Below are positions 5,361 to 45,313 of a DNA stretch of 45,313 nt, one piece after another. The notes under the pieces are model-generated. The model made no database searches. It had not been told where the DNA came from and saw nothing but the letters and a program-made list of their open reading frames with translations. The DNA lies in contig DF237617.1 in assembly GCA_000708835.1 (NCBI GenBank), positions 1 to 45,313 of the forward strand, given 5' to 3'. This DNA is from Klebsormidium nitens (lineage: Eukaryota; Plantae; Klebsormidiophyceae). How positions within the stretch are numbered: the first letter of the stretch is position 1; the number at the start of each line of letters is the position of its first letter. A program made the translations under genes and the position numbers.

Positions 5361-6722
5361 TTCTTCGTTTGCTCTGATGGTTAAAAACACTTACTGATAG
5401 CGGTTGAAGAGTGCCGTCGTCATCAAACCAGTGTCACGCAATGTAAGCAGAGCAACCGGCTTAGCAAGCTTAGGAACCGACTATTTATGTCTACCATGCT
5501 TTCGTTGGGAGCGATGTCAGCGAATCGCTCCTCCGCAGGAATACTGTCGAAGACACAGTTTGAGTCAGTTGTAGAAATTTGTTCGACCGAGAAGGCTGAG
5601 TTTAGCAAGAGGTGAATCCTGAGCAACTTAAGCATCTCAGAGCTTAGTAATTGAGTTGATGCATCTGCAAAGTTCCAGGGGACAAAAAGGCAACGCTTGT
5701 TTTGTGGATTTTGACTCAGTTGGATACTGCAAAGTCAAATACTGGCGCCTGAATTCGGCGTGCATCAGCGGATCTCTGCACCGAATCAGCCTCATCCTAA
5801 AATCGAATCACTGCGGCGTAGCTCCTAAGCCGGCGCACTTTGAAAATAAGCCTAGGAACTGCCTATACGGAGTGGCTTGGTTGGCAAGTTTACTTTCACG
5901 AGTAAACGGCGCAGCCCCAAGATCATGACAGTGATATGAAACTTACAGCTGCATCAGAATCCCAGTGGAGCAGGATGCTGACCGTTGTTACGATATTAAT
6001 TATTGTGTTACTGAATGCACTACCGTAGCGGGATCCGTCACGCAGTTTACTGAGTCAGGGAAACGTGATCAATCGTTGGCCCTACACGATACGCGTCCTC
6101 TTTTGATTCCCTGGTCATGCACGTCATGCATCATGGGCCCGCCCCTCATGGTGACTCCTGAGTAATTGCTCATCCAGCGCCATCATCATACGGTCAAACG
6201 TAGACAAGCTTTTCGCTTAGGACATCTTACATTACTACGGGCACAAAGCAGAGCTGCCGCATGGCTATTTTGAACATACATAAATGATTCTCGACCGATG
6301 CCGTCAACCTTAAAGGACTAATGTCATTCGCTCATACCTGAAAGCAGCGCAGTGGGCTTATGGCCTGCAAAGTAAGTGTCCGCGCTGCAAATGTTATTTG
6401 AGGGCTCTTGCAGCCAGACACTGCGGCCTTTCGCTGAAAGAAAGCCCAAGAAGTGTCGTGTTTCGCCATACGCTCGAAATGGGTTTACATGTACCATCAG
6501 GTGCACCTGACCGTAATGACGGTATCTTTCTTGCCCTGTCCTACCACGTTGAAACCCTTTAGCTGTTCGACCTTTCTGCATGAACTTGCACAGTGAGACG
6601 GACCATCCTCTCTGTTGGAACCGTTGATCAAGCAAGCCGATACTCATGCAAGTTCGACTGTGGACAGTTTAGCCGTTGTGAATCTAAGAACTGTCTAGCT
6701 GATCGGCTACCTAAGCGTGCCT

Positions 6723-9700
6723 TCAATCTGTGGACGAGTGCTGCAACCTACTCGCACCGGGCCCTGCTCTGGCAACCGCGGCAGGTGTGTAATCAGACAA
6801 CTTCCCGAGGGGGGTCAGTCCGCCGGATTCCGTTCCTTCGTCCAACGGATCCTCCTTGATCTCACTCAACCGCTCCGACGACGCAACTCGCAAGTCGGGC
6901 GAGGCTCTCGCTCCCTTCAACGGCGACGTATCGACCTCCGGTGCGTTTCCCCGCTCGTCTTCGGTGATTTCGCTCTGCTTGAAGCTCTTCCGCTCCTTCG
7001 GGCCGCCAGCCTTGGGCGACGTACCTTCCCCGGGCTCGTCTCCGTCCGACATACCTGCCGGAACGCAAGTGGAACGTGTCAGTGTTGTAGTTTCGGGAAA
7101 AGCTTCATCGCTCCTTTCATACTCTGTAGAAAGGCTTATGAGAAATTGCCTTTGCACCAGTGTTTGATGACCGATTTGTCTGGGCATCAATCGAACTTGA
7201 TTTTGAAAACCTCCATTCTACTATTTATCTTCAAATGTGACCGTTCTCCTTGACTGACCGAGAAAGGGAGAACCAGAGGGTAACCCGCGACGATGAGTCG
7301 ACTCCTCCTCCCGCCAGATACTACAAAACAGCCGAACACAAAACTTGCCGAGGCCGCGACTCGTGCCCCAAGTCCCGGAATCGTCTCCTTGCGAAAATAC
7401 TTCCGTCCACGAGAGAATATTTTCGACCCTACAGTGCGCTTCCCCCCAAGATGCCACGTGTCATCCTCTCGCCGCTCACCGCGCGCGCGGCTGATGGCCC
7501 GCTGCCAGCGGCCCTTGATCTCGTTGACGTGGAGCACGGTGTCGATCCGGCCCCGGATGTCCTGCATGCGGTCCTGCACCTCCTCCTGCAGCTCCTCGAT
7601 CTCGTCCTCGATGTCGCCCCAGTACACCCGGTAGATCTCCTTCCCGATGTACCCCAGCACCGCCACCGCCGTGCCTGATCGGAAGTAAAAGAATGCGTCA
7701 ATTGTGACGTCAGCAAGCAGATACGTCTGTGCAATGTTTTGGCGACTTTGGAGAGTTTCGGAAAGGCGTTCCTGCATGCTAAGAGCTGATATCCTTCCCG
7801 ACGTACCCTAGCACCCTACCGCCGTGCCAGATCGGACGAAAGAGAGTGCGTCAGACTGTGACGTCAGCAAGCATACATCTGTGCTGTCAGTTTTTGCGGA
7901 GAGTTGCCGAACGGCTTTCTTGGATGCTAAAAAGCTGATATCTTTGAGCAGATTGAGCCTCTTTGGAAAGTTTACAGTTGGCGTGCGAGCACTTTGATCC
8001 TCTGACCGCCTCAATGATGAGGAAAAATATCAGTCATGGCATTGTTGTGAATCTTGCAACGAACTCGCTGGAGCTCGCGAGAACGAAAACAGACAAAGGT
8101 GAAGAAGAGAACGAGAGTTTACTTAGGCATGCAAGATTATAGTGCAGCGCCGTATGTGACGCAAATGTGGACACGTATGCGTGCATCGAGAAGAACCGAT
8201 GGAAAGAGGCACTCACCTAGCAACGCGATGCCCTGCGCATGTGGGGATGCCATCCAGGCCATAACGATGCAGAGGGACACGGGCACCAGCATCAGACCTG
8301 CGCGCGCACACGAAGTCCTCAGCTCGTCAAAGATTCAGAGCGGCGCGAGGTCCAACTCTTGCATTTTTGTGACGAGGTCGAATTCAGTAGGTGTCGGGAG
8401 AACCTGCTCGGAGACCATCTCAGAGTCGGCCCCAGAAAAAGCGCAGCAAATCGATGTGCGAAGCCTTCTCGTGAACATCCTTCGTCAAAGCATGACCAAA
8501 AGCTTCAAGGGTCGCAACCATAGTTACAGAACATTGGCAGCGCTCACCCGCGAGCAGGTATGTAGAGACGGGGATCATGTAGGGCCGGAATGCGTCCTCC
8601 TCGCTGAAGCGCAGCTGGACCAGCGCCCCGAATTTGAGGATGGTCGAGAGGGAGTAGAAGAGCATGTCGGCCTGTGGCCAAGCGACACGTGTCAGCACAA
8701 AGGCAAACAAAACTCTGCAGTTCCGAGACTGCCCATGATGATGTTGCCTTCGACGTCAGCTCCCAAGTCGCACTTAAATTCAATTCTATGAAACACGTCA
8801 GTAATCGTAGCTCGAGGAGGAGCATCAGAGTGGAAGCTTTAACGACCCTGCGGTCGAAAGATACAAACTCCTCGATCGGACTGGCAGTAAACCTCTTGGG
8901 GACTCCCTGCGATTTGTGTTCGTTTGAGATCATCGCAGAAGCCAGGCAATTAGCTCTCAGAAGTCAGAAGCTGTTACATCCTGGTGTCGTACCTCGGCAA
9001 GGCTGGTGAAGTTGAAGCCGATGAGGAAGAGCGTGCAGGCGGACGTCAGCAGGATGGCCGCCCACGGCGTGTTGTACCGGGGGTGCAGCGTGCGGAACAT
9101 AGGTGGCGCCTGCGGTGACGGCATCGCTGACGTCAGCAACTCGTGAAGGCCTGCGTTTTCCCAGTTTTCGCTTGCATTTCTACTTGCGAGCGTCACGTCT
9201 TTCATCGACTCGGCCTTGCAAAGGCAGAGCAATCGAAACAGGCATCTTCCGAATCTTTGGAGAATCTCACAATGATTCCGCGGCTAACATGGCGCCTCAC
9301 CTGGCGAATGAGCGACATCCCGTAGACGAGCCTCGAGTTGGTGCACAGCCGCGTGAGCAGCAGCCCCAGAGCGCTCAGTGCTGCGGCCAGGCCCATCCAA
9401 ACCTGAACAAGCGTGAAGTAGCTTCAGCAACTAGAGCATCTGTACTTCGACACTTTTGAAAGTTGCGAGGACGATTTGAGCAGACTCGGCATCAGACTGT
9501 CTCTGGTACCGTGGTACACTTCTCGGAACGAGCGGAGCGGCAGAACTAACAGAACCCATGGAAGGAGAACGTGGACTACAGTTTTCATTTCTGGACCCCC
9601 ACACCATATTGGTATCCTATGCGCGCGTGGCTCAAAGATTGGTTACTTTTCAGGTCACCCGGTCGCCTGGCTTTGGCCCGTCCAGTCACAGTATTTCATT

Positions 9701-12352
9701 TGCGTGCCAGGTATTCGAGCCCCTGGTGGGTTACGATCGGTCGGTCAACCAGTCAAGGCTACGTTTAATCGCTCAAGCTACACCTGAGTCTTTCGAAGCT
9801 CGCGCACAGAGTAAGTGCTGTTGTGGGGGTCCAGAACTGAAAACTGTAGTCCGCGTTCTCCTTCCACGGGTTCTAACAGCTTCAACGGTCACCCGTCCTA
9901 AAAGACGATGCCGACAAGCACAGAGTAGCGAAAATTTCTCAATCGGCCTGTGACCCCTACCTCAATGCAAGGTTGTCCGAAAGAGAGTGTCTACGCTTTT
10001 TCGAGAGGTAGAAAATGTTTGGGAAGAGGCGACTGTATGCTACTTGTACGTTTGCACCTTACGAAGAGGATATTGAGGCCTCACCTTGAGCCATTTCCCC
10101 CCAACTTGCTCAGCAACAGTCGCAAACGTGCCCGTGTGCCATGCTGCCACGTTGGGGAGCACGCTTATCCCCACAAACGTTGGCAATGCGTAGCAGAGCG
10201 TCACCAGCGCAACGGTCACGCTCAACGCACGGGGGTAGGCTCGGGACGGGTCAGCAACCTCTGCAGCGCAGTTCCCAGAAGCGTCGAACCTGTGCACAAA
10301 TGCGAAAAGTGAGCGTCTCGATTGGATTGTCCTGATGAGGACGCGGGTCATACATAGCTGCAGGCCACTTTGGCTTCGAAATTCATGAAGAATCTCAAAA
10401 CTAGGAGCAAATGGGTGTCAATAGCTGGAACCGAACATCTTGAATATCGAAACATATCCGCCTGTAAAGCTTCCTCTTACAGGAGACAAGAAACGGTGCT
10501 CTTGCCACGACTTTGAAGCAACAACCTGCAGCCTAAGCCTCCTTCTACGACGAACCTCAGAGCAATTAGTAAAGCGATGCCTGGCTCACCCAGACAGGTT
10601 CCACAGGAGGACTGTGATGAGCCGCCCCCAGTTGATGGTGGTGGGGAAGGGATCCGCGAGCCATGCGAAATTGAGTTGAGGGAGCCCCGCCAGGATCATA
10701 ACTACGAAGGGGAGGAGCACCAGAACGCCAAAGATGACAGAAGCGGATCCCACAATGTCGACACCCCGGATGTTGAGCAGCGTGACCAGCATGACCACCC
10801 CAACCTTGGCCCCAATGGAGACGGATGTGGAGATGGACCCCGGAGAGAAGAGCGACTCTGAGAGGTAGTCGACAAACAGGACGGGGTACAGCGCGTTGTC
10901 CAGGACGCTGTCAGGAAGAAAGGGGAGCAGAAGGTTTGAAGATGTGTAAGACGACAACAGAAAGGGGGTCTGAGTCAAAGGAGTACCAGCAGTTGCTGCC
11001 TTCCCAAAGTTTGACGTATGAGATTCGAAGACCAGGATTTGGGAACCGGGACTAAAGCCCAGGATCTCTTGACCTGGAAGTTCGTCGTCAGATTGTGAGG
11101 CATCTGCAAATTATGCTCTGGAGAGCCATCTATGCTGGCTGTTCCGACAAGAGGGAGCTGCTTTTTCCATCGACCTTCTTACAATGCTGCGAGAAGTTTT
11201 TGAAGTGGCAGTTGAATTCGAGAAAAGTATTGGTACAGAAACCATGATATGCTGAGCACAGCACTGACAGTTCCTTTATGTAGCAATTTTGCTGAGGCAA
11301 AACGCGCCTGCGCCAGACGGGGTATGGTCTTTTATGTTGCTCAAAGTATCATCGATCAGATGATTATGAAGATCCCTCATGCTGCATCTTTTGCATCCAA
11401 TAAAAAACACACTCCAGAAAATAAGCATGAACGACCTGCTCACCTGTAGAAGAATGCATAGCAGCTGTTGACAAAGCTCCAGAAAGGACCAAAGGCGCGG
11501 TACACCCAAAGCACGTGGCCTCCAGACTCTGGGATCATGCACGCTAGCTCTGCGGTCATGAAGGCCAGTGGAGCGCACCACATGAATGGCAGGACTAGCA
11601 ACCCTAGAAAGACCAGCAGGGCGCCCCCAGCGCCGACGCTGTCCTCCAACCCATACGGACCCTGCAATTTGGCACGGTGCAGACAGAGATAAGAGCATGT
11701 CGACCAATTTGTTCTGACAATTTCGAATCAGATTGCTCCAAGCTGCATGAATGATGTTGCATACTTGTAATCCTAGCAGGCATTCACGTTGTGTCCATTT
11801 AAGGAGCTCATTTTCCTGATCTGCAGAAAGAAAGGAAGGTTCATGTCCTTCTCATTCCAATGTGTCTCCCTCAGCAATAAGGCAATGTCAACAATCGCAA
11901 TATGACAATGCTTCATCTGACAAGGTTAGACCACCTACCCCAGCAACTGCGAAGAAGGTTATTCCTGTAAGCTGCAGCGTTGTCAGCAGATGCGTTTTGC
12001 TGATGAGGCCTCCGGCAATTGCCAGGCTTGGGCCTTGATCTCCTTTCAGGGGGGTGATTGGCCTGCTCTGATACTCATCCTGCAGCGCTCCCAGGGGCCC
12101 TAGGTGCATGTGACTACTTCTGCGAGAGCCACCCTGCGGTATGCTCTGGGTGAAGCTGCCCTGCCTGCTGCCTAAAGACAGCGGTCCTGACTCCTGCCGG
12201 AAGCTGCTTCGTCTGCTCCAGTTGTGAGCACCCCTGCGCTCAGAGCTGTTCTGTCGGCTCAGGCCAGGCACGTTTTCTTGCGCAGAAGATGAGGGGGCAC
12301 TTTCAGCAACTTCCACAGGCTCCTGCAGGCGCTCATAAGCTGGACCCCCCAT
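6723..12352 (-). CDS. APC-superfamily amino acid/polyamine permease (plant PUT/LAT-like), 10 exons
   Basis: Exons 11939-12352, 11444-11661, 10590-10907, 10085-10289, 9301-9402, 8993-9109, 8548-8671, 8217-8297, 7480-7674, 6723-7123, all GT-AG and in phase. Motifs: FFAVAGGPYGLED, AELACMIPESGG, DNALYPVLF, LWNLSGFD, EVADPSRAYPRAL, HPRYNTPWAAI, LRFSEEDAFRPY. Confidence 0.9.
7634..7935. repeat. ~154-bp tandem duplication spanning the intron 8 acceptor and the start of exon 9 of the permease
   Basis: 7634-7787 aligns with 7788-7935. The transcript-upstream copy has the acceptor AG changed to TG and a 1-nt deletion. Confidence 0.85.
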
Positions 12353-19500: not shown

Positions 19501-20978
19501 AGATGAAGCGAGACACGTAACTCTCTCTCTTTTTTCCCTCAATTCCATGCACAACCCTGCCAGTCAAAGGATTCTACAAGATCGTTGTTTGCGTAGAATA
19601 ATGTGACTGTCTTTTTCAATCTGTTCAAAAGAAATACTGAGTGGAAAAGATTACTACGTTTGAGATCCTACCAGAGAGTTGGCCAGCCAGGGTATCTTGG
19701 CCGCTGTACGTCGCGCGCCATGCAAAATCCGGCTCCACCAGATTGCTGAAGAGCCTGACAGTCCATCCGGGCAGGTTGACATCCATCGGACTAAGCAGAT
19801 CGTCTAGAGTGAACGCCGAAGCGACAAACTTGGCAATTAGCGGCTTCAGCGCATCTCTCTCTTGGAACCTTCTGACATAGACAAGTCCTCCATCTCCCAG
19901 GAAGATGGACAGCGTCTGCAGAGCCTGTGGAAAGGATGAAACAAGTCTCGATCTAAGCAAGACACAACTCTAACTTACATTTGCTTCTTTACTTTCTTGG
20001 TCATCTTAGAGCTGTTTGAAACTGGAAGACACTCGCAGGCAAACCAGAGATAGAAAGAACAGGACGAATATCGAAGTTTGAGAATGAGGGTTGCTTCAAT
20101 GATTATGACAATATCTGGTGAACGAAAGAGAAGACATCAACTCTTGCATATATATGCGACAGTGCTTTTGCTCAAAGGTATAAGAGAGAATACTACGGCA
20201 GAGGAAACGGATTTCAGAAACAAATGCCCTTTGTTCATCTCATGCTTAGCAGTCAAAAAATTGATATAATAAAGTGTTACAATCAGTATAGGCAAGCTGG
20301 ATAACCACACAATAGCTATTATTTGTTGATTCTCTCTACCTGCGAGCACTTCAAGTTGACCTAGATTCCTGAGTCACTCTGCTTTTCACAATTTCTAATC
20401 AGTGCCAAATCTTCCTAAGAAAAGCTGCTTGCAACAACCAATCTCACCTCCAGATTCTCCGGTTGTTTTTTCGCAATGTCAATAGCCGCGTCCATAAATC
20501 CAAGCCCCAACGCTTCAGGAAACATCCCCGTGCGGAGCTGGCCGCCAGAAGTCATGGCTGCTAGGCCACTCCTCACCATGGCAGTATGCATCGCTTTCTC
20601 TGAGTGAAGATGCTTCACCAACAGCATAAATTGCTGCACAAACTCTCGCATGCCTTCAGGCACGTCATCATCCCCCAGACCGACCTTCATCCCGGTGGAA
20701 ATGATGAAAAGAACCTTCTCGAGCTCTTCTGGTGACAGGTCCTTCAGAGCAACACGTTGATCCAGAATCTTCAAACAGCGTGGAATGTCATAGGTAGTGC
20801 AAGAATCGGAGGGCATAACCATGGGAGGCACAGCGACTGTCCTAGCTGACGTTGCAGCGCGGACAACCGCTTCTTTGGCATGCTGGAGAGCTCTGACACG
20901 AATTGCCTCGAGGCCTTCATTGATCTTCTCTGTTGTCCTCTGCACATTGATTTGTTCTTTGGGAGGTGGCGCTTCCAT
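16600..20978 (-). CDS. MYND zinc-finger protein, tandem copy A (8 exons; predicted TAA at the exon 3/4 junction)
   Basis: Exons 20448-20978, 19672-19924, 18929-19141, 18262-18364, 17927-18056, 17309-17437, 16937-17109, 16600-16672. C-terminus CDQCGALKMPGELKRCSRCKSARYCSADCQRADWKEHKKTC is a MYND finger. Splicing at the paralogous site gives CCT T|AA. Confidence 0.8.
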
Positions 20979-22260
20979 CTTCTTTTGTGGATCAAACTGA
21001 GGTTCTTGAGAGCGGAGAGATCGATTTGGATGGGTAACTTTGAAAAGGTTTGCATACAAGGCGCCTCGTGATTCAGGTCCTATTGACACAAGGTGACGCA
21101 GGATGCGCATGCCAAAATGCCCCGCCGAAAAGCAGAATGCTCGCCTTGCTCCCACTTGCCCCTGTCTAAGAATTCGAAAGAGTTCATGCATGAACTGTCG
21201 AAGACTGATTTGATTTTGGGGCTCTCGGGCTGAAGACAAAGGTAGCTTGACGACCGGGGTGCACTTTCCGGGCAGGTTTCAAGCCCGGAGTCAGCTTTCT
21301 GGCTTTATATCTTCAGGCCCCGGCGCGCCGGTACCCGGTTACATTCACGATGGTCATTTGAGTGCTCGGGACGATTGACCATCGCAGACTTTCTGCTGCT
21401 CATAGAACGTCATCCTGACGAACTTGCGAGGAATCGACGTTCGAAGTGCTAGAAACTCTCCTCGACGAAGCAAACAACATTTGATTCGGCCCTTGCACTG
21501 GTTTGTGTGAGAGAGGACACAAGAAGCGCACTAGCTGCAAGCTTTCGACCTCACTGCACTGGATTCGGCTTCGCTGGGTTGACTCAAACTGGCGACACGC
21601 CGTGACCGATTGCAGCTCTGAATGGAGTCAGAATCATGAAGCTTATTGTAGCATAAACATCCAGCTCGACTAAGTCATCTGGTCCCCGTCATGTCATAGA
21701 CACACAGATAGACCAACTGCTGAGCGGGAGCCGGTCGCACTTGAATACATGTCGTGCAACGCACATCGACTGTTGCATGCCCACGCAAGGCTCAAGCAAC
21801 CACATTAGCACGTGATCCATAGTTGCTTATAGCGAAGATCCTTGATTTAAGAATTAAAGCACAACATTCAACTTAAATACATTCTATGAAATGGCCATGG
21901 CTTTTCATTCGAGTCACACTGCTTGCAGGCAGCGTGTAGGTCAATCAGGAAGGTGTCGCTTGGCAAGAAAGGAACCGAGATATGGTGCCTGATGCTGGAG
22001 TCTACAGTCCCTCCTGTGGCTCAAGAAACCCTCACTTCGATTCGAGACCAGATAATCCGATGACAGCGCCTGACGGAAAAGACTCACTTTAAAACCCCTG
22101 TATTCGGACCAGCTCAAAGTGCCTAGCTCAAAACAGCCGTAGCGTGTTTTGCAAGGCATGTTATCGAAGGTCTCGACTGACGTCGAGGGATCGTTATTAC
22201 ACTTATAGTACCGCAGAGAAGCCTTCAATCCAGCAGAAATCCTCTCGGCTGGTGCTACAT

Positions 22261-31000: not shown

Positions 31001-32644
31001 TGCCTTAACCCCCTTTGCACCTTCAAAACTGGAAAAATCACTCTTTTTGATAGGATTATCTGAGCTTGTGAGATCATCCCCCTGAACGGATGAGCAGCTC
31101 CAATATCCTTAAAGAGCAATTCGCAACACGAGTCGAAGAACCGGACGGTTGTCATTGATCATTCTAGCCGTTCGTGCACAATAAGCCCCGTTTTTAGGAG
31201 CCTGCAATATTGTTTGATGTGCATAATACTTTGTTGAAGTCCTTCAGCATCAAGGAAAATCAAGAGTGGAAGCTCTTCTTAGAAGATAAAACGTCCTACC
31301 TGACAGACAGCTTGCTCCAGGAACCAGCTGCCGAGGATCTAATCGGCCGCCGTACGCCGCCCTGAACTCAAAGTCCGGCGCCACGAGACTGCCGAAGAGC
31401 CTGACCGTCCATCCGGGTAGATTCACATCCATCGGACGGAGCAGATCGTCTAGAGTGAACTCTGAAGCGACGAAGTTGGCGATCAACGGCTGCAGCGCTC
31501 CTCTCTCGTGGAACTTCTTAACGTAAGCAGGTCCTCCATCCGCTATGAAAACGGAGAGAGTCTGCAGGGCCTGTTGAAATGCGAGACACGTCTTGATTTC
31601 GGCAAGACACAAACTAAACCTCACTCCACTTCTTCGAAACTCCAACCTTGGTTGGAATGACACACTTCAAGGCAAATCAGAGATAATGAAATACCTTTTT
31701 GAGATCGCTGTTTGCCGAAAAATTCTGCCCAATTGCGTCTGTCAACCAAGCTTTGGACCTTCGAGATAAATCTGAGGATGGTCTGAATCAGCGGCTCCAC
31801 ATTTGACAGTGCTTCTTCTGGAAAGAGATAGGATGATTGGACAGCAGACACATTTTCAAATCAAAGTTCCTGGGAAAGAAGATTCTCTACGAAACGAGTG
31901 CATTCATCCGTTTTCAGCTTCTTGCAGTCCAAATACAGGACAAAATGCTGTAACAAAATCTGTGACTGAGTGACCAAGTAACAGCTGATTTTGCTTTTTG
32001 AATTCTCTGTCTATGCGACCAACTAGAATCTAAAAACATTCATAACTAGAGGTTCTCCTTTCAAACTTCTTAGCGTCTTTTTGTGGCAGGCCAGATTGAA
32101 ATCCACTGCTCACCTCCAGATTCGTGGGATCTTCCATCACAATGTCAACCGCTGCCTCCAGAAAGCCAAGCCCCATCGCTTCAGGATACAGCCCCATGCG
32201 AAGCTGGCCGCCAGAGGTCATGCCTGCCAGTCCATTCCTCACCATAGCGGTCTGCATCGCTTTGTCTGAGTGAAGATGCTTCACCAGGAGCATGAACTTG
32301 TGCACAAATACCTGCATGCCTTCCGGCACCTCATCATGCCTCAGACCGACCTTCAGCCCGGTAGAGAGGGTGAAGAGAACCTTCTCAAGCTCTTCTGTTG
32401 ACAGGTCATTCAGAAATACAGCCTTCTCCAGGATCTTGAGACTGCCTGGGATGTCATAGGTGGTGCCAGAATCGGAGGGCATAACCATGGGAGGCACAGC
32501 GACTGTCTTAGCTGACGCTGCAGCACGGAAAACCTCTTCTTTGGCATGCTGGAGAGCTTTGACGCGGATTGTCTCGAGGTCCTTGTTGATCTTCTCTGTT
32601 GTTTTCTGCACGTCAATCTGTTCCTTGGCAGGTGACGCTTCCAT
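28097..32644 (-). CDS. MYND zinc-finger protein, tandem copy C (exon 7 acceptor AG lost)
   Basis: Exons 32114-32644, 31300-31570, 30520-30732, 29962-30064, 29393-29522, 28826-28954, 28470-28642, 28097-28169. The exon 7 acceptor is ttcatGG|GCT, versus cccAG|GCT in A and tccAG|GCT in B. Confidence 0.8.
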
Positions 32645-34155
32645 CTTGTTTCGTAGGTTTGGCTCAAAATTCTTGAAAGCAGAGAGGACAGGTACGTCCC
32701 AAGTGCCGCCTCCTAAAGGGTTTGCGAAGAAAGCGCTCTCGTAATAACGATGCGTGCAGGATGGTTGTACCGAAGTTCTTCGCCAGGAAGTAAAAGGGCT
32801 CGCTGCAGCTCTGCTCCTTGCAAAAACTTCGTGCATGAACACTGCCATTGGAGGCTCTGCCTTCCTGATTGTCGCCGCCTGTGGAAGCTTTCGAGCTTGA
32901 TTTGACATTTGGTGCCCGGGGCAGCTGGTTGGTATCTTGGCAACCGGGGGCGCACTTTCCCGGGCCTCGGCACGCTTCAGACCCTGGTGTCAATCACATC
33001 CCTGAACCTCGCGAGATACCCATGCAGTGACATTGATGGGGACCGGTACAGATTTGCTCCCACTCAGAGGGCGCCATCGAGGCGCCATCATGGCATCCAG
33101 CGCCATCTTGACAAACCCTCGAGAGTTCCGAACTTGAAGTTCATGACTTTTTGTGTTTTGAAGAGGATTCAACGGCCTTTCATCTACATAGCGTTCTTGC
33201 TGAAGTCTCATGTGTGAACAGGCTCCTCATGCGCACATGCTGAGTCCCTTCTTAAGTAATTGCTCTCTGTCTGCCTGCGCGGGGTTGATTTGAAGCTGTC
33301 AATTGTGCGGATACCACAGTATCCGGCAGCCCCTCAGCCTTGTCAAGCACACTCGTTGCCAAATCATTCTGAAGGCACTCTGAACGACACCACATCATGG
33401 CCACGACGACGACGACATCAGTAGCTGCATGATCGAGCTACAGCCGGAGCTGGTTGCAAGAGAGTATGATCGGGTACAACGCAGTCAGTCAGTCGGTCAG
33501 TTCAGAAGCTTGTGTCGATAGTTGGGCAATGATGCCAATTGTAGCCCCACTTCCAACGTGCTGTATAACCGATCAAACCGTTTTATAAACGTTTTCGCGA
33601 TCTACTTTGCGTACATTTGTGTCGGTCGATCGGTAGCAGATTCGTTGATGGACATGCCTGATCAAGGGCGTCAGCTACATAGCATTCGACTGTGTGATGG
33701 CAGCGTACCGCAATCAATCACATGATAGTGGACGTCGGCATGACAAGAAAAGAATAGCAATGTGCTGCATGGTTAAAGCGACGCAGTGACTGCATGACAA
33801 GATCCTGGCAGCTGGAATATATATTGCCTCATGGGATACTCCTTGAGGTCCACGTTGTCATACTCAGAGATTGGCGCTCCTTTTCTATCACTGCATGGCC
33901 CTTAAAAAGCCTGAGCGGATATAAGTCACCTTGATTTGTGTGCATACGGTAGATCTTGCAACATATTTGTCCAGTTTTTCAGCCCTTTCTGTACGTCCGT
34001 ACAGACATCTCTATTCTGCTCACCTTTCCTGACTGCGCGTGCATTATTTTGTTTCCTCGACAATTTTCGTCTCGCTTACGTACACCTGACTCATCAGACT
34101 TATGTACACGTGGCTCATTTTAACATATGTCCGCATGGCATATTCGGACGCCCAA

Positions 34156-37100: not shown

Positions 37101-38132
37101 CCGATGCCGGATCCTAACGCTGCGACCTCGCCACTTAAGTCCCGGCCCAGGACCAAGGGTAAGAGGGGCTCAAAGATGGACCTTCCGTAGCCTTCTCGTA
37201 TCTGCAAGAGTCATTTAATGGTACTCTATTAGGAGTTTGAACGTGAAAAGACTTGAGGGGCCAATCGGTCAGACGGCGTATTCTGTGCGCTCCAGATACC
37301 CAGATTGAAAGTGAGCGCTGTTCATACTGAAATTACTTTGGTTAAATGGTAAAATCGAGATGGAGACGAGGATTTGGGGTGCCTTTGGCTTTCTTCAGTT
37401 GCCAGGGCACTGATGGCTGGCATCTCTAACTTCAGCAGGTGCGCCCCAGTAATGATTGCAATACGTTCTGATCAGCGGTACGATTGGAACGGGTGCACAT
37501 TCGCAGAGTGGGTGCACATTTGCAGAGTTCTTTGTTAAAGAGTGGTGAGAGTTTTGGCGCACCACTTCTGAACCTTCCATGCTTGTAACTGGCTGGTAAA
37601 TTTCAATGCAAATTGCTGATAGGAGAGCGGCACCCAAGTTTCTCTACAGTGGCTGATCCTACATCAAAGAAGCATTCCATGGCTCCGTCTGAAAGTCTAA
37701 ACGACGCTTTTACGCAATCTGCATAAGAAAGTGCTCTCCGTAGCGACAGCGGATATTCATTTCTGTGAATCCCCCACATCATAGAAGATGAAAGGAATCT
37801 GGAAAACTTCATAGAAGGTTTGCATGATCACCCCGGGTGCACTTAAAGCAAGCTGTCATTGCCCTCACCCGCACGTCGAGCGGGTTGATCGCCGCCGCAT
37901 GCACCTTGACCAAGACTTGCCCCGCCTTGACCGGGGGCACGTTCACACCGTCCCTCAGCTGCAGAACTTCGGGGCCGCCAAAACGGGGCAGCACCACTGC
38001 CTTGCACCGCTGCACCGCCTGATGGCCCTCCGCGCCCCTGCATGCCGTCGATGCGAATGCGCGGCATTGCTCGAGGTCAGCTGCGGACCATCGAAGAAGC
38101 CACGCCTTGTGCCAGACGCCTCGAAGGGCCAT
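34156..38132 (-). CDS. Reticulon-4-interacting protein 1-like NADPH oxidoreductase (MDR/quinone-reductase family), probable mitochondrial presequence
   Basis: Exons 37869-38132, 36900-37201, 35999-36164, 35048-35276, 34156-34337. Motifs: FGGPEVL, VKVHAAAINPLD, LPLVLGRDLSGEV, IPFAALTAW, VLGAGGAVG, YDVVLDALG, RGKVVL. Confidence 0.92.
36115..36430. repeat. ~163-bp tandem duplication spanning the intron 2 acceptor and the start of exon 3 of the RTN4IP1-like gene
   Basis: About 36121-36280 aligns with about 36284-36430. The upstream copy keeps its AG acceptor and reads QRLMVLGAGGAVGLFVPIV*. Confidence 0.85.
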
Positions 38133-39149
38133 GTTGCGCTCGTGAAACAGTTGTTGACGTCAGGCGGCAGCCTGAGCAGGCTTCTTTCCGCTGAATTTCC
38201 AATTTCCTAGGTAGTGAAAAGCAACCGTCGCGCGCGGCGGGGCCGCGCGCCAGCCTTCGGACGGCCCGGGTCCGATGGACTCGGAACCGGCGTCGCGGCC
38301 TGCGCGCGCTCAGCCTGTCACGGGGCGGCGCGAGTCTCAAATCCCACCTAACTCGCTCGGCCGTCCGATGAGCAGGGTTTCTGTGAGCACCGTCGATAAG
38401 GGATTTCGGCCGGAAGCAGTGAAAGTGCCCGGTCTGGCCCCATACCCATAAGCTATGCGCCTAGGCCATCTTAAAAGCCACATTGAAGGCTGCCTGACTC
38501 GCAAGACCACTTGCAAGGTTCTGGCAAGCCGCGAGCCTTCCATGTCACTGTCACTATGTACACTGAGCTAAGCCACTCGGCTGAGCGGCCCCAAGTCTTC
38601 GCGTTGGCCCTCCCCCAAGTGCACTCAGCCAAGGACCTACATTCTGTTCCACGAACTGTGTCACCATATGTATGTGAACTTCTGGATTCAAAGATTGCGC
38701 AAGGATTCAGCAGCGCTATGGTGAGCGAGAGGCGAGATCGACCATTACAATGATCTGGTCGCGTCGCAATATTGCAACTCCTGATCAAGGTGTGTGTGCA
38801 ATACGCCGCCGGTGGACCTTGGCATTTTTGCGTGTGCAATCATCATTCAAGTGCACAACTCTCTTTTTGATCGCATTCAACTGAAGTGCTGACGGCGAGC
38901 TGGGGGCATTTGCTCTATTGAGCTTCTTGGATGTTTTCCAGCCTATGCCGCTTGCTTTGCAAGAGGAGGGTGGTACTGTACTTTCAAACGAGTTGAATTT
39001 CAATGGAACTCATTGGGGCAGGGCGTTCAACTTTGACACATAGCTGCGCTTATCATGCGACACAATCAGGTTGTTATGCCTCCCTTGCGTGCGCGTCGCT
39101 GGTCGCCGCTATTAGCAGTGGTCTTTACTACCGTGGACGTAGTGTCTTC

Positions 39150-40350
39150 AGAGGCTGAAAGTCAAAACTCTTGTTGTGAAGAGCTTAGAAGCTTATATCA
39201 AGAGAGAAGTTTTGACTGGTTGGCGCTATCACACACAACCATTGAGAATCTTGCGTGGAATGGTTGGCCTTGCGAGGGAGTCAAAAATTCTGTCTTAAAA
39301 AGCTCAAATGCTTATATCAAGAGGGAAGTTTTGACTGGTGGGCGCTATCACCCACCGCGTTTTGAGAATCTTGCGTGGAATGGTTGGCCTTGCGAGCGAG
39401 TCAAAAGTTCTGGTCTGAAAAGCTTATTTGCTTACGTCAAGTGGAGACTTTTGACTGGTGGGCGCTATCACTATATCACTCACAACACCTGTTGGATTGT
39501 TGGTAGAATGCATGGTCGGCCTTGCGAAGAAGTCAAAACTTCGGTCTTCTGAGAGTTCAAATGCTTATATGAAGAGGGAACTTTTGCCTGGTTGGCGCTA
39601 TCACCCACAGTGTTGAAAATCTTGCGTGGAATGGTTGGCCTTGCGAGGAAGTCAGAAGGTTTATCTTGAAAAGCTCAAATGCTTATATCAGGAGGGGATT
39701 TTTGAACGGTGGGCGCTATCACCATATCACTCACTGTTGGTAGAATGCATGGTCGGTCTTGCAGCGAGTCAAAAATATCTGTCGAATTGCTGGTGGGATG
39801 GTCGGCTCTGCGAGGAAGTCAGAAGTTCTGTCTTGAAAAGCTCAAATGCTTATATCAAGAGGGAACTTTTGACTGGTGGGTGCTATCACCCACAGCTTTT
39901 GAGAATCTTGCGTTGAATGGTCGACCTTGCGGAGAAGTCAGAAGTTCTGTCTTGAGAAGCTCAAATGCTTATATCAGAAGGGATCTTTTGACTGGTGGGC
40001 GCTATCACTCACAACATCTATTGGATTATTGGTGGAATGGTCGGCCTTACAATCAGGTCAGAATTTCTAACCTCAGAGGATGAAAAGCTTTTACTCACGA
40101 GGGAGCTTTTGACTGTCTTGCGCTATCACTTACAAATTTTTGGGAAAATGGACGAAATCTATCACGAGTCAAAAGTCTCGTCCTCAAGCGATGAAAAGCT
40201 TGTACATACAAAGGAACTTTTGACTGGTGTGCACTATCACTCACAGCGTTCTCCAAAAAAGACGGTCTTGCCTACGAGTCAAAAGCTTTGACCTAGAGGT
40301 ATACAAAGCTTCTACTCATGGAGGAAGTTCTGACTGGTTGCCACAGACGG
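39150..40350. repeat. Minisatellite array, about 10 units of about 119 bp, with two alternating unit types
   Basis: The core aaagctcaaatgcttatatcaagagggaacttttgactggtgggcgctatcac recurs at about 39193, 39312, 39432, 39565, 39683, 39850 and 39969. Degenerate copies lie at about 40089, 40199 and 40308. Confidence 0.92.
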
Positions 40351-40752: not shown

Positions 40753-41469
40753 TTGAGGTGGATGCTGATGGCGCTGTTCCAAGATGCAAGAGAACCCACT
40801 AGAGTCTTGCAAGAGCTTAGGGAGATTGAGAACGACCAAAGCTCAGAGCTTCTCTTTCGTTTCCGTGGCAGGATGGACCCGGCGACGGTCTCTCGAGATG
40901 TGAAAGAGCCTTCCGATGTCGTGCTCCTCGCCTCAACCAACCCCGCCGCCAACGCACAATTGCATGAGGCGCTAGCCCGTGGTCAAGCCGTCCGGAGCTA
41001 CGCGGCAGTCCACTTCCAGGGCTCGGCTCCACTTTTTGGCGACATCAGAAGCGTTCCGGCTGCCGTCTCGCCCCTGCCAAATGCTGGGGGCGTGCGAGGA
41101 GGGCGCCCGTCCTATGCAGCCAAGCAGGGGGGCACGGACTTTATGTTCGACTATGGGTTTGCCTTCAGTCTGCGGCCTGCTGGAGCTTTTGCTCGAGGCG
41201 GACTTGGATCGACGTGCATCGGGCGCATTTGTGGCGGAAAGGGGGCGGTCTACGCAAGGGGAAGTGAGCCGTTCATCTGGGAGAGGAAACGGAACCGGGG
41301 TGGGGCACTGGTCTGCCGAGGTGGGGGAGGGCACCTCCTGTGCTTGCGGTGCGTAGAGGCCGAGTATGAAGCTGGTCGCCCCTTTGTCTCGAGCGCGAGC
41401 GGATGCCCCGTTCCTCAGCAAGAGCTCTTTACCAAGTATGAAGCCTTCCCCGGGACGAAGGAGCTTTGA
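40753..41469 (+). CDS. ORF in frame with the downstream transposase, separated by a single TGA; probable 5' part of the transposon ORF
   Basis: Same frame as ORF 41641. The only stop between 40720 and the donor at 42700 is TGA 41467-41469. It contains a Cys/His cluster (LVCRGGGGHLLCLRC). Confidence 0.55.
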   Translation: MRWMLMALFQDAREPTRVLQELREIENDQSSELLFRFRGRMDPATVSRDVKEPSDVVLLASTNPAANAQLHEALARGQAVRSYAAVHFQGSAPLFGDIRSVPAAVSPLPNAGGVRGGRPSYAAKQGGTDFMFDYGFAFSLRPAGAFARGGLGSTCIGRICGGKGAVYARGSEPFIWERKRNRGGALVCRGGGGHLLCLRCVEAEYEAGRPFVSSASGCPVPQQELFTKYEAFPGTKEL

Positions 41470-41640: not shown

Positions 41641-44600
41641 ATGGCAATCCTGTCAGAGATGGGCCGGAGCAGAATCCCTCCAATGGCTGTTGCTCCCGGC
41701 CTATTCCTCGTCCCACAGCTCGACGCCTGTAGTGGGCGCCTTCTAGACATCTCGACGACAAATCGGGGCCTCGTCAATGTGCCTCGACTTGTCAAGGTTG
41801 ACCACATGGGCAGCTTCCAGTGTCTATGCGGCCAGAGGGGGTGCCGGGATCACGAAATGGCGTTTTTGGAAGAGACACGGCGCATGAGCGGCTGGTGGCA
41901 CGGCGGGGAGGCCATCTTCACGGCCTTTGACGAAAGCCGCCCGTTTGTGCGGGAGGTCACGAGCGGCGTGCCGTGGTTGTTGCCACTGAACCACAGAGGG
42001 TGCGTGGGGAATGTGTTGCACGGGCCAGATGCGGAGGCGTGGAGGGGTGGGCCACAGCTTCGGGTCTTTGTCATGAGCAGTCCCGGAGAGACACCGGTGG
42101 TTTGCACGCTCGAAGGCACCAGCACGCACTGCAGCGGCATCGAGTGTGCGGGGCAGGAGAGGTGTCAACACCTGTCGAGGGTGTGCTCGAAGCAATCCTT
42201 GCCCCAGAGCGAGCCCTCAGCCAACGGGGCGATGCGACCCCTTGCTGATCGGCGGGCAGAAAGGGTCGAGCAGCGGGAAGCCGGTGCCAGGAGGCTCATG
42301 GTCTGCAACGACCCCCTTTGTCGGCGGCCGGACTCGAAGGTCGAGTGCACACACCAAAAGACGTCCGAGCCCTGGGAGTGCCTGCCGGCGGCGGCGCTTG
42401 ACATGGGCCACAGCCACAAGAAGATTGACACGATCATGAGTAGAGGTGGGGCGAGTGTCACGAGCCTCTGCGAGCGCTGGGGCGAGGAGGGCGTGCAACG
42501 GAGGGACAAGGCGAAGCACTTCTGTGCACCTCGACCCTTGGACCCGCTCTCTCCCTGCGGCCGCCCATGGCAGGTGGAGATCAGAAAGGCTGCCCTGACG
42601 ACGGCGGGGGCACGCTACGAGGTTACTACCTATCGGAGGGTCTGCCGGATTGCTCCGGGACGAGAGGCGGCATGCTGCTCGGTTGCTTACGACGGCCAGG
42701 TGAGTATCACTCTTCAAAATCATCTCCTCTCGCAATTCTCTTCTTCTCCAATCGAGCCATCGCTCTTCTATCTCTAGCATCACGGGCCTCCCTGAAACCT
42801 CGTGGTCCATTATGCTCTTGGAGCGCTTTTAGGATCAATTTCCATTTGAGATAGTATCGTGCTTTGCATGACGGTCTTGGATCAGGCACCCATGGTAGGC
42901 CGGAAAGATCACGGATTTGATAATTGCGCCGGGCATCCATAGTGGTCACGCAGTCCAGGAGATTGTATCGCCTTCCAATACAGTCATCGCAAACTACTGC
43001 TTCATGATGAGGAGGGAAGGGCCATCGAAAGCATAGATTGGACTGCTTGCACGATAAACATGCTTGCATTGGATACACTTTGATGCAAGGATGTGGGCCT
43101 GGCAAAGGCATCTTGGTTGATTGTGGATAGCTGTGCACTTTTGTCCCAACGTAATCGTACGCATCCTTGCACGTACATGCGGCAGCTGAGAGATCTTCCA
43201 GATCGAGCTTTCCATTTTCAGCAATGATACTGAGCACTGACCCAAATTGTGCGTTGGTGTTCATGCCAGATGTCCACCTTCTGCAATGGCCATTGAAAGA
43301 AGCAGCATAATCTGAACGCAATGACAATTGATCTTCTTGACTGCTGCTTGATTACAGGAGGACGGCATCTTCAACTTCTCCGGCACGACGCTCCTCTCGC
43401 ACGGCCTCCTCCTGCGCAACCACTTTGCGGCGGCCCTAGGGGCAGCCCACAGCCTCAACTTTGAGGCCGGCGACATGGCCGCGAGATGCCTGGAGGGGCT
43501 CGGAGTCCCTAGGCTAGACGATCGGGTGTTCGACTCGGCCATGCAAGCCTTCAACGACCTGGCGGCACGCGCACGGATCCAGCACGTGTGCTCGCGCTCC
43601 AATTGCGCGCACCTGTACACGAGCGAGGTGGAGGCGGCCGAGGCGGAGGCGCATGCATCTGGCGTCCCTCTGAAGGCGGAGCGAACGGAGGGGTTGACCT
43701 CGGATTTGGCAACGTACGCGTTTGGGCGAGACAAGGTCATCACCTTTGACGGCACCTTCTTTGCCAACGCAAGCGCCATGCGAGACTCGACCACGGAAGT
43801 GTCGCTGCATAGCATATGCGAGCCGGATCCGGGGGCGCCCAGGGTTGCTGGCGGCTTCACTTCACTGAGCGTGGGCGGGGTGCGGCCCTCACAGGGCGGA
43901 AGCCGAGCGCCTTTGGACGTGGCGCCAGAGGGGATCGACTGCCCTTGGAAGTACCGAAACGGACTTTCTGAGTTGCGGCCGGCCGTGCGATCACTCGTGC
44001 AGAGGTGGTGCAACTTCCGAAAAGCTGCGGCCCAAGGGAGCAACGCGCCTTTAAAGCCGGAGGAATTTGTCATGATGCGAGAAGGGCTGCCGGCAAATGT
44101 CGTTGCCCTGATCGACTTCGTGACGGAGGCGGAGGCGTGCGCCGACCCTGCCACGTGTGCCGTCTGCCAGGCGGTTCCGAGGCGGCCTTGGATGCAAGGG
44201 TTTCTCAAAGAGGGGCCGGTGGGGCCAACCGGTTGGTGCCCAACCCACTTCCAACCATACGGAGCCCTGCTCCATACCCTGCTCATTCCGAGGTACTCCT
44301 GGGTGTTTGGGCGCATCGTCACCCTCAAGCTGTTGCGCCACTTGCTATTGGAGGGGCCCCTCGACGCGCGAGGCATGGCATACCTCTCCAACGACGGCCC
44401 CATGCTGGCGGCCGTTCTGCGCCTCCATCCCACGGCAGAAGGGTTGCACGCATTCCCTAGGACGTTGCGGCCACTCGTGCGGGACATCTACGCCACGAAC
44501 CTCCTGTGCTTTGAGCCCAGTGCGAACCGGCCCAGCTCGCACAATTCGCGGTCGCCTCTGGCTGCCCTCCATGACGCGACCGAACACCTGTGGACGATCG

Positions 44601-45313
44601 AAGGGGAAAGGCTGAGGCTCATGGGCCAAGTGGAGGCGGCCGCGATGGAGTACGCGGAGCAAAGGGGGGCAGTTCTAAAGTGGGCCGCCAATTCGGTCCT
44701 CTTCGAGCTCGAGGTCCGCGAGCCCTCATGCTACGAAGAGGGCGGGTTCCTTCGAGCGCCGTCAACACTCTGCGCGGAGCGGGTTGCCGCCGTTTCGGCG
44801 TACGCGTTCCACCCTTTGCTGTACGGGCGGCCGCGATTCGTGGACTGGGAAGACGAGGCGGGCCGTGGAAAGAAGGGGTCGGAGGAGCGTCTAACTCAAC
44901 ACTGCAGCGCCCCCAACCCACGATCATTCAAGGGGCGGGCCGGGATCTTCATCGCATGCTGCCAAGATCGGGCGCCCCTCGGGTACCATTGGCTCAAGGG
45001 CGGCGAGTCGGTCTTGGACCTCGGGACAATTCTCCTGACCCGGTTTCCCTTCAAGACGCTGCGGGGCATGACTGTCGTGGAGGACGCTTCGTGCAACGCG
45101 CAAGAGTGGATGCTGAACCGGGTACCGCAACTGGCAAAGTTCATTCTGTTTGTCGTTGACCGCTTCCATTCGGGGCCCATCAGCTGCGCGCCATCGGGAG
45201 CAAAGCGCTACGCTACGCACACGTGTGCTCCGACACTTTTCATCGACACTTTCCCGCAACATGAGCGGACAATCACGACAGCCTCGGAGGGCATCAATTC
45301 GGGGTTGAAGAGG
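41641..45313 (+). mobile_element. KDZ (Kyakuja-Dileera-Zisupton) transposase, Zisupton/HMGXB3-like; 3'-truncated by the window edge
   Basis: Exon 41641-42699, GT-AG intron 42700-43357, and exon 43358-45313, which I translated by hand as 652 codons with no stop (missing from the ORF track because it has no stop). It has SWIM-like clusters (CLCGQRGCRDH), a CxC4-like PCGRPW...RVC...CCSVAYDGQ|EDGIFNFS...LLSHGLL, VITFDG, and a catalytic core GIFIACC...GES...LLTRFP...EDASCN...MLNRVP...FVVDRFH...HTC...TTASEGINSGLK. Confidence 0.88.
42707..43264 (-). CDS. Intron-nested antisense gene: F-box-like N-terminus + C4 zinc finger + XPA-C-like putative DNA-binding domain (185 aa from the first ATG)
   Basis: Uninterrupted frame from 43351 to TGA 42707, lying wholly inside the transposase intron. 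Segments: VLSIIAENGKLDLEDLSAAACTCK (F-box-like); CLSC-x18-CDDC; YNLLDCVTTMDARRNYQIRDLSGLPWVPDPRPSCKARYYLKWKLILKALQEHNG followed by a basic helix (XPA-C-like). Confidence 0.7.
   Translation of the reverse strand: MNTNAQFGSVLSIIAENGKLDLEDLSAAACTCKDAYDYVGTKVHSYPQSTKMPLPGPHPCIKVYPMQACLSCKQSNLCFRWPFPPHHEAVVCDDCIGRRYNLLDCVTTMDARRNYQIRDLSGLPWVPDPRPSCKARYYLKWKLILKALQEHNGPRGFREARDARDRRAMARLEKKRIARGDDFEE

Follow-up and report, generated by a model that had tools for sequence, protein, structure and literature searches.

A gene nested antisense in the intron of a KDZ-like transposase of Klebsormidium nitens has been kept under purifying selection while the lineages that carry it diverged, and its product appears, from profile and structure matches, to be an XPA-fold protein distinct from XPA itself. 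It lies in the window analyzed here (the whole 45,313-nt contig DF237617.1), for which an original prediction had proposed an accessory gene hidden inside a transposase intron; nine other copies share both the intron and the antisense gene, with dN/dS of 0.2-0.33. The features concerned are as follows, in window coordinates:

38321..38480, plus strand: left end of the element, starting approximately GGGGCGGCGCG; four copies agree inward of it and differ outside
39159..40338, no strand: repeat array (~119-nt units) that bears inverted AGTCAAAA/TTTTGACT boxes, recurring in the other arm of L002/L014
40873..42699, plus strand: first coding exon of the KDZ-like transposase, from a predicted start codon
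42700..43357, plus strand: transposase intron, phase-0 GT-AG, 658 nt, with boundaries common to nine other copies
43358..45313, plus strand: second transposase exon, running off the window; motifs nearly invariant in seven sister loci, dN/dS 0.12
42707..43264, minus strand: the nested gene, read antisense (185 aa and a stop codon); dN/dS 0.25-0.32 relative to its two closest copies
43130..43258, minus strand: three-helix N-terminal segment (aa 3-45), degenerate F-box-like (AlphaFold helices, sub-threshold Pfam match)
42980..43060, minus strand: C4 zinc finger (C69, C72, C92, C95), which aligns with that of XPA
42740..42955, minus strand: XPA/Rad14-like DNA-binding core with a shortened beta-hairpin and a long Arg/Lys-rich helix (aa 104-175)

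The transposase intron had been placed correctly: it reads GTGAGT...TTGAC...TTACAG in phase 0, separates YDGQ from EDGIFN, and contains 8 to 12 stops in each of the three sense frames. In ten copies, the window included, its splice sites interrupt the coding sequence between the same two codons; in the sisters GT follows YDG(Q/R/K) and AG precedes E(D/G)GIF, with intron lengths of 619 to 1,591 nt. The transposase transcript is presumably spliced here, and a search for repeats or a target duplication at the intron ends found none. Exon 2 contains candidate catalytic residues D (FDG, ~43748), D (EDA, ~45083), and E (ASEG, ~45287), along with DRFH and HTC motifs. Across seven sister loci the FDG, EDA.CN, DRFH, HTC, and (S/A)EG.N motifs, which we take to fit KDZ, are almost unchanged, and the Cys pattern of this Cys-rich protein is conserved across copies. 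A Pfam search of the exon pieces, each run separately with E up to 10, gave no match, KDZ and CxC models included, and so did not confirm the CxC4 label of the original prediction; "KDZ-like" is as far as these tests carry its putative identity. Exon 1 of the window copy, and of that copy alone in a comparison with three sisters, has a premature in-frame TGA (41467-41469) where the sisters have an Arg codon. Further insertions or introns lie within the transposase at L008:10684-11130 and ~8190 and at L009:3283-3817 and 1277-1454, and an extra intron after WFLNR is probable in L008 and L009.

On the opposite strand, the nested frame is free of stops from 43351 to 42710 (214 codons) and is bounded, as originally described, by a TAA at 43352-43354 and a TGA at 42707-42709; the ATG at 43264 gives a 185-aa product. 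A frame this long (214 codons or more without a stop) appeared in only 12 of 20,000 first-order Markov shuffles. The gene had been said to fill the intron edge to edge, which holds for the window copy but not for the family. Compared with L001 and L002, the window copy is missing one base at ~42741, so that its stop falls 7 nt inside the donor rather than 20 nt from it (corresponding to window 42720-42722), and both relatives have stops in the stretch ahead of the ATG that is open in the window copy. The exact fit is thus partly an accident of this copy. Elsewhere in the family, the start mostly lies 70-100 nt from the acceptor, and the stop may lie past the donor, within exon 1, or as much as 484 nt before reaching it; in L004 and the P0036/L013 clade the frame continues through the donor into exon 1. 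Several clades have an extra 70-130 C-terminal residues that are absent from the window subfamily.

The AT-richness of the intron is real (47% GC against 64% in the transposase exons, range 62-64%), but its reading as a sign of capture from another source is not supported. We rejected AT-richness as evidence of foreign capture because 47% GC equals that of host intron-rich DNA nearby (46%) and of the element's other genes (48-49% in the primase-helicase and recombinase-like genes); the element's noncoding arm has 49%. It is the transposase exons, not the nested gene, that are the base-composition outlier.

Protein searches yielded ~25 relatives of the nested protein from algal or environmental assemblies, and for ten of these we compared the DNA. 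At nine of the ten loci (L001, L002, L004, L005, L008, L009, L012, L013, and L016) the gene lies antisense in the same transposase intron, a count that gives no measure of the fraction of elements without the gene, because the nested protein was the query that led to every sister locus. Metagenome and viral contigs were scanned for patterns from this protein, P0018, a neighbor of P0018, and an exon-2 alignment, without a match; since the exon-2 scans matched nothing, elements with an empty intron were beyond the reach of the search. One presumed relative, P0013, was dropped as a spurious match to a fish protocadherin, and its locus, L007, was left out, as was the motif-profile score of L011, which would be circular with P0018 in the profile.

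Conservation with dN/dS below 1 in other copies had been the proposed check, and the gene is present in all nine, though broken in several. For the nested gene, dN/dS is 0.25 between the window and L001 (95% CI, 0.15-0.39), 0.32 between the window and L002 (0.20-0.48), 0.32 for the remaining pair among these three closest copies, and 0.21 for the distant pair L009/L016; the transposase gives 0.12-0.19. Differences between the window and L001/L002 fall mostly at third positions, and the nested frame is the only one of the six without stops. Identity to the window copy is 26-72% for the nested protein and 66-92% for the flanking exon ends, and the conserved Cys and core residues persist in nested proteins down to 26% identity. 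The gene is real, and it was under purifying selection while its lineages diverged. Its protein changes much faster than the transposase, a pattern that would also fit an arms race with host proteins. Individual copies are in decay: the nested frame is broken in L008, L012, and L013 and its start in L001, and the transposases of these copies are broken too.

Two other observations concern the same intron. In L009 (5798-6160) and L016 (6642-7067), which belong to the clade with a 1.59-kb intron, a second ORF on the transposase strand faces the XPA-like gene; it encodes an Ala/Arg/Lys-rich protein of 120-141 aa that is conserved between the two loci and has no significant Pfam match. At L001:9820-10002, the start of the nested gene is duplicated in tandem (~90 nt), and the two units resemble different sister copies, possibly as a result of recombination between copies.

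Searched singly against Pfam, PHROGs, and PDB, the 185-aa protein has no match. A profile of its family (14 members), when compared to PDB, bears out the CxxC..CxxC finger and XPA/Rad14 segment of the original prediction: the nine best matches are XPA or Rad14 (E, 6e-7 to 4e-4), followed by the XPA-like domain of SLC30A9, with an alignment that spans the C4 zinc finger through the basic helix. A repeat search agreed. The AlphaFold model has a mean pLDDT of 80 (85-93 across residues 51-150); in Foldseek, XPA/Rad14 structures occupy the first 16 rows, albeit with weak E values (from 7e-3), a VIA structure comparison gave Z 5.2 (rmsd 6.6, 79 aligned residues), and XPA_C clusters came first in an Atlas search, at a TM of about 0.32. 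Taken alone, these structural scores are modest (TM 0.2-0.33), but they agree with the profile; the Pfam XPA_C model stayed below its cut-off. The protein shares with XPA/Rad14 (PDB 6j44, 1xpa, and 5g32) the C4 finger, the T..eA...Y...DL core, the hairpin, the Y/F strand, and the basic helix, all in the same order. From this homology of fold, we infer that it binds DNA.

It differs from XPA in that its hairpin is 2-4 residues shorter in the profile alignments and lacks a fixed equivalent of the aromatic wedge (Trp175/Phe262): a hairpin aromatic (Y, F, or W) is present in several clades without being universal, and the window copy has Cys133. The profile match stops in the long helix, the C-terminal Cys pair (Cys261/Cys264) is missing, and in place of XPA's long N-terminal, partner-binding arm is an F-box-like N-terminus. 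These two cysteines define XPA, which is absent from green plants and algae (PMC10810185), whereas the nested protein sits on a mobile element in such a lineage. Given the missing Cys pair, the shorter hairpin, and the absence of XPA from green plants and algae, we consider it an XPA-fold protein and not an XPA orthologue.

The first reading had missed that the two genes belong to a large composite element, which has primase-helicase genes on the same strand as the nested gene. In sister elements, genes that face the transposase on this strand occupy L001:1506-7219, L002:1529-7243, and L014:5376-10570; they include a Prim-Pol/DUF5906 primase-helicase and, further out, pieces of a Herpes_ori_bp helicase. 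A HIRAN-like gene, also on the nested gene's strand, is a weak match (E, 0.015), and a recombinase-like gene has tyrosine-recombinase-like motifs by eye and no database match. The stretches of sister elements that were read showed no capsid gene. The iteron-like 119-nt repeat family recurs at L014:2938-3830, 6716-7330, and 10720-11210, while in L001 the equivalent place is taken by a 125-nt array of unrelated sequence. Related element sequence extends well over 14 kb; a right end, terminal inverted repeats, and a target site duplication (KDZ elements have 7-8 bp duplications and, in some lineages, inverted repeats) were not found in 25 kb of L002/L014. A candidate from these searches, GGGGCGG at L014:2561, was rejected for want of a matching duplication. 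An Rfam search gave no match, and a promoter scan with a bacterial model, which does not apply to a eukaryotic host, stayed at chance level.

As for the surroundings, the left end lies ~190 nt (38132-38321) upstream of the start codon of a minus-strand host gene of the ADH_N family (Pfam ADH_N), so the element probably inserted in the promoter region of this gene. Elsewhere in the window, at 20415-21239 and 32030-32908, the minus strand has two ORFs (274 and 292 aa) that are paralogs of each other.

A search for the donor lineage among viral proteins had been suggested, and giant-virus proteins do lead the viral fold matches (E, 2e-3 to 4e-2), one annotated as RAD14 and one as F-box. The top BFVD matches are from Satyrvirus (A0A3G5ACJ5), Clandestinovirus (A0A8F8PME3), Catovirus (A0A1V0SCB1), and Pandoravirus quercus (A0A2U7UAM6); the fourth is the F-box protein. 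The only free-standing relative among the ten loci, P0018 (E, 9.5e-5), has a long branch in the tree, and its ~5-kb contig (L011:1-5067) is giant-virus-like, with small, dense genes, a DUF5759 match (E, 2e-15), an expansin-like ORF by eye, and no transposase. An algal giant virus has an annotated DUF5759 as well (PMC12085832), and the literature describes an F-box/XPA-like outgroup clade that is separate from XPA (PMC10810185). By architecture and fold matches, this clade and the giant-virus proteins have the same apparent architecture as the nested protein; they are free-standing as far as known, whereas the nested gene is fixed in a transposase intron and its F-box is degenerate. The links of the nested gene appear to point to the giant-virus gene pool, direction of transfer aside, and its source is likely this F-box/XPA-like clade, which is also present in giant viruses. 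Trees of the nested protein and of the exon flanks (the two flanks joined with X) have no well-supported branch, so we claim neither a donor nor an order of events.

The explanation we favor, with somewhat better than even confidence, is that the gene is spliced out of the transposase message and read from the other strand, and that its protein binds branched DNA of the replicating or integrating element. Starting from the selection, fold, and linkage described above, we infer the splicing, transcription, and binding steps. Removal of the intron from the transposase transcript would leave the nested gene to be transcribed separately, driven by a promoter within or close to exon 2. Like the XPA domain, the protein would recognize branched or bent DNA, such as junctions of single and double strands; it would serve the element's own replication or transposition intermediates rather than host excision repair, alongside the HIRAN-like and primase-helicase products. 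Its F-box-like N-terminal helices may either serve for protein contacts or be left over as a relic. The gene is inherited with the transposase in the same intron, a position that would make separation of the two rare, and in sister elements it shares strand and base composition with the HIRAN-like, recombinase-like, and primase-helicase genes.

Alternatively, the protein may be a substrate adaptor of an SCF ubiquitin ligase, which we think unlikely: its N-terminus would bind SKP1, its XPA-like domain would act as a tether to a target or to DNA of the element, and host silencing or repair proteins would be ubiquitinated and removed, a role that would accord with its fast evolution. The F-box-like start that was originally proposed is partly borne out. 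The segment has three predicted helices and the pattern L.L.DL...A.TCK, the Pfam F-box-like profile matches 3 of 18 family members (best E, 0.011), language-model neighbors of the segment are nearly all F-box clusters (best 0.90, with only 100 shared features), and the Pandoravirus match and a Zisupton isoform for which an F-box has been reported (PMC12062965) point the same way. Against this, the window copy scores 11.5 bits where the cut-off is 24.3, the match is limited to profile positions 15-30 of 47 (the second half of the motif), no F-box appears among the PDB profile matches or in two fold searches with the N-terminal segment alone, and a comparison to COI1 is at background (Z 3.9). 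The F-box consensus has a leading Leu-Pro and a Trp, both of which are absent from the nested protein. An F-box ancestry of the segment is likely; SKP1 binding is uncertain, and we lean against it. More doubtful is an extended version, in which a KDZ transposase and a virus-derived primase-helicase module would form a capsid-less, self-replicating composite that uses the intron as a cargo bay, and a giant-virus-derived F-box/XPA protein would bind replication or integration junctions of the element, bring SCF to them, and strip host repair and silencing proteins from them. If true, such a junction-targeted SCF would be a new, DNA-structure-guided counter-defense.

It is improbable that the protein is instead a DNA-binding regulator that acts on the 119-nt arrays or a promoter and, aided by convergent transcription, tunes expression of the transposase or replicase. 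The fold of the XPA core also includes DNA-binding regulators, nested antisense genes can interfere with transcription, and repeat arrays with inverted boxes are present in both arms of the element. However, the arrays of L001 and the window are wholly different while their nested proteins are 72% identical, which argues against recognition of the repeat sequence, and selection at the protein level shows that more than antisense RNA is at stake. Capture of a true host XPA, which would direct nucleotide excision repair to the gaps left by transposition, is very improbable: homology to the XPA/Rad14 DNA-binding domain would suit it, but green plants and algae have no XPA (PMC10810185), and the nested protein lacks the C-terminal Cys pair and the long N-terminal arm, has a shorter hairpin, and matches Pfam XPA_C only below threshold. 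Finally, a chance frame, or the passive remnant of an independent element inserted in the intron, might explain why several copies are broken, but is largely refuted by the selection signal (dN/dS well below 1 in several clades), the rarity of such frames among shuffles, the Cys and core residues kept to 26% identity, and intron ends without repeats or target duplications.

Several parts of this picture are already known: cargo of giant KDZ (Kyakuja-Dileera-Zisupton) transposons, nested genes generally, the F-box/XPA-like clade, and the Zisupton F-box. Giant KDZ elements with accessory genes include fungal carriers of TET/JBP (PMC12730594), elements of up to 30 kb in Ectocarpus and Chlamydomonas (PMC12477816), and KDZ1-3 of Cryptococcus (PMC11343200); they resemble the present element in being large, with a Cys-rich D..D..H/C..E transposase and extra genes often on the opposite strand. 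The cargo described there lies beside the transposase, and in the passages covered none of it is intronic, XPA-like, or primase-helicase (PMC12730594, PMC12477816, PMC11343200); the present element differs further in that Pfam KDZ and CxC models do not match it and its inverted repeats and target duplication were not found. The Zisupton F-box isoform and fish F-box-CxC7 fusions (PMC12062965) likewise link an F-box to a KDZ element, but there it is part of the transposase-domain polypeptide, whereas here it belongs to a separate gene on the other strand. The original prediction knew of no nested cargo in KDZ elements, and our literature search, with most subscription papers outside its scope, found neither an XPA-like cargo nor a gene fixed in a transposase intron.

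Gene callers that allow one gene per locus miss a gene such as this one, which has long held a fixed position within the intron of the transposase. For most accessory genes of giant DNA transposons in eukaryotes no function is known; this one has a recognizable fold, and its product is small, so assays of DNA-junction and SKP1 binding would be simple. The F-box/XPA-like clade, so far uncharacterized, may gain a function from it as well. The finding connects KDZ transposons with primase-helicase replicons and the gene pools of giant viruses, and it suggests that a domain of the XPA type, the core of a human repair factor, serves a mobile element whose host lineage has lost XPA.
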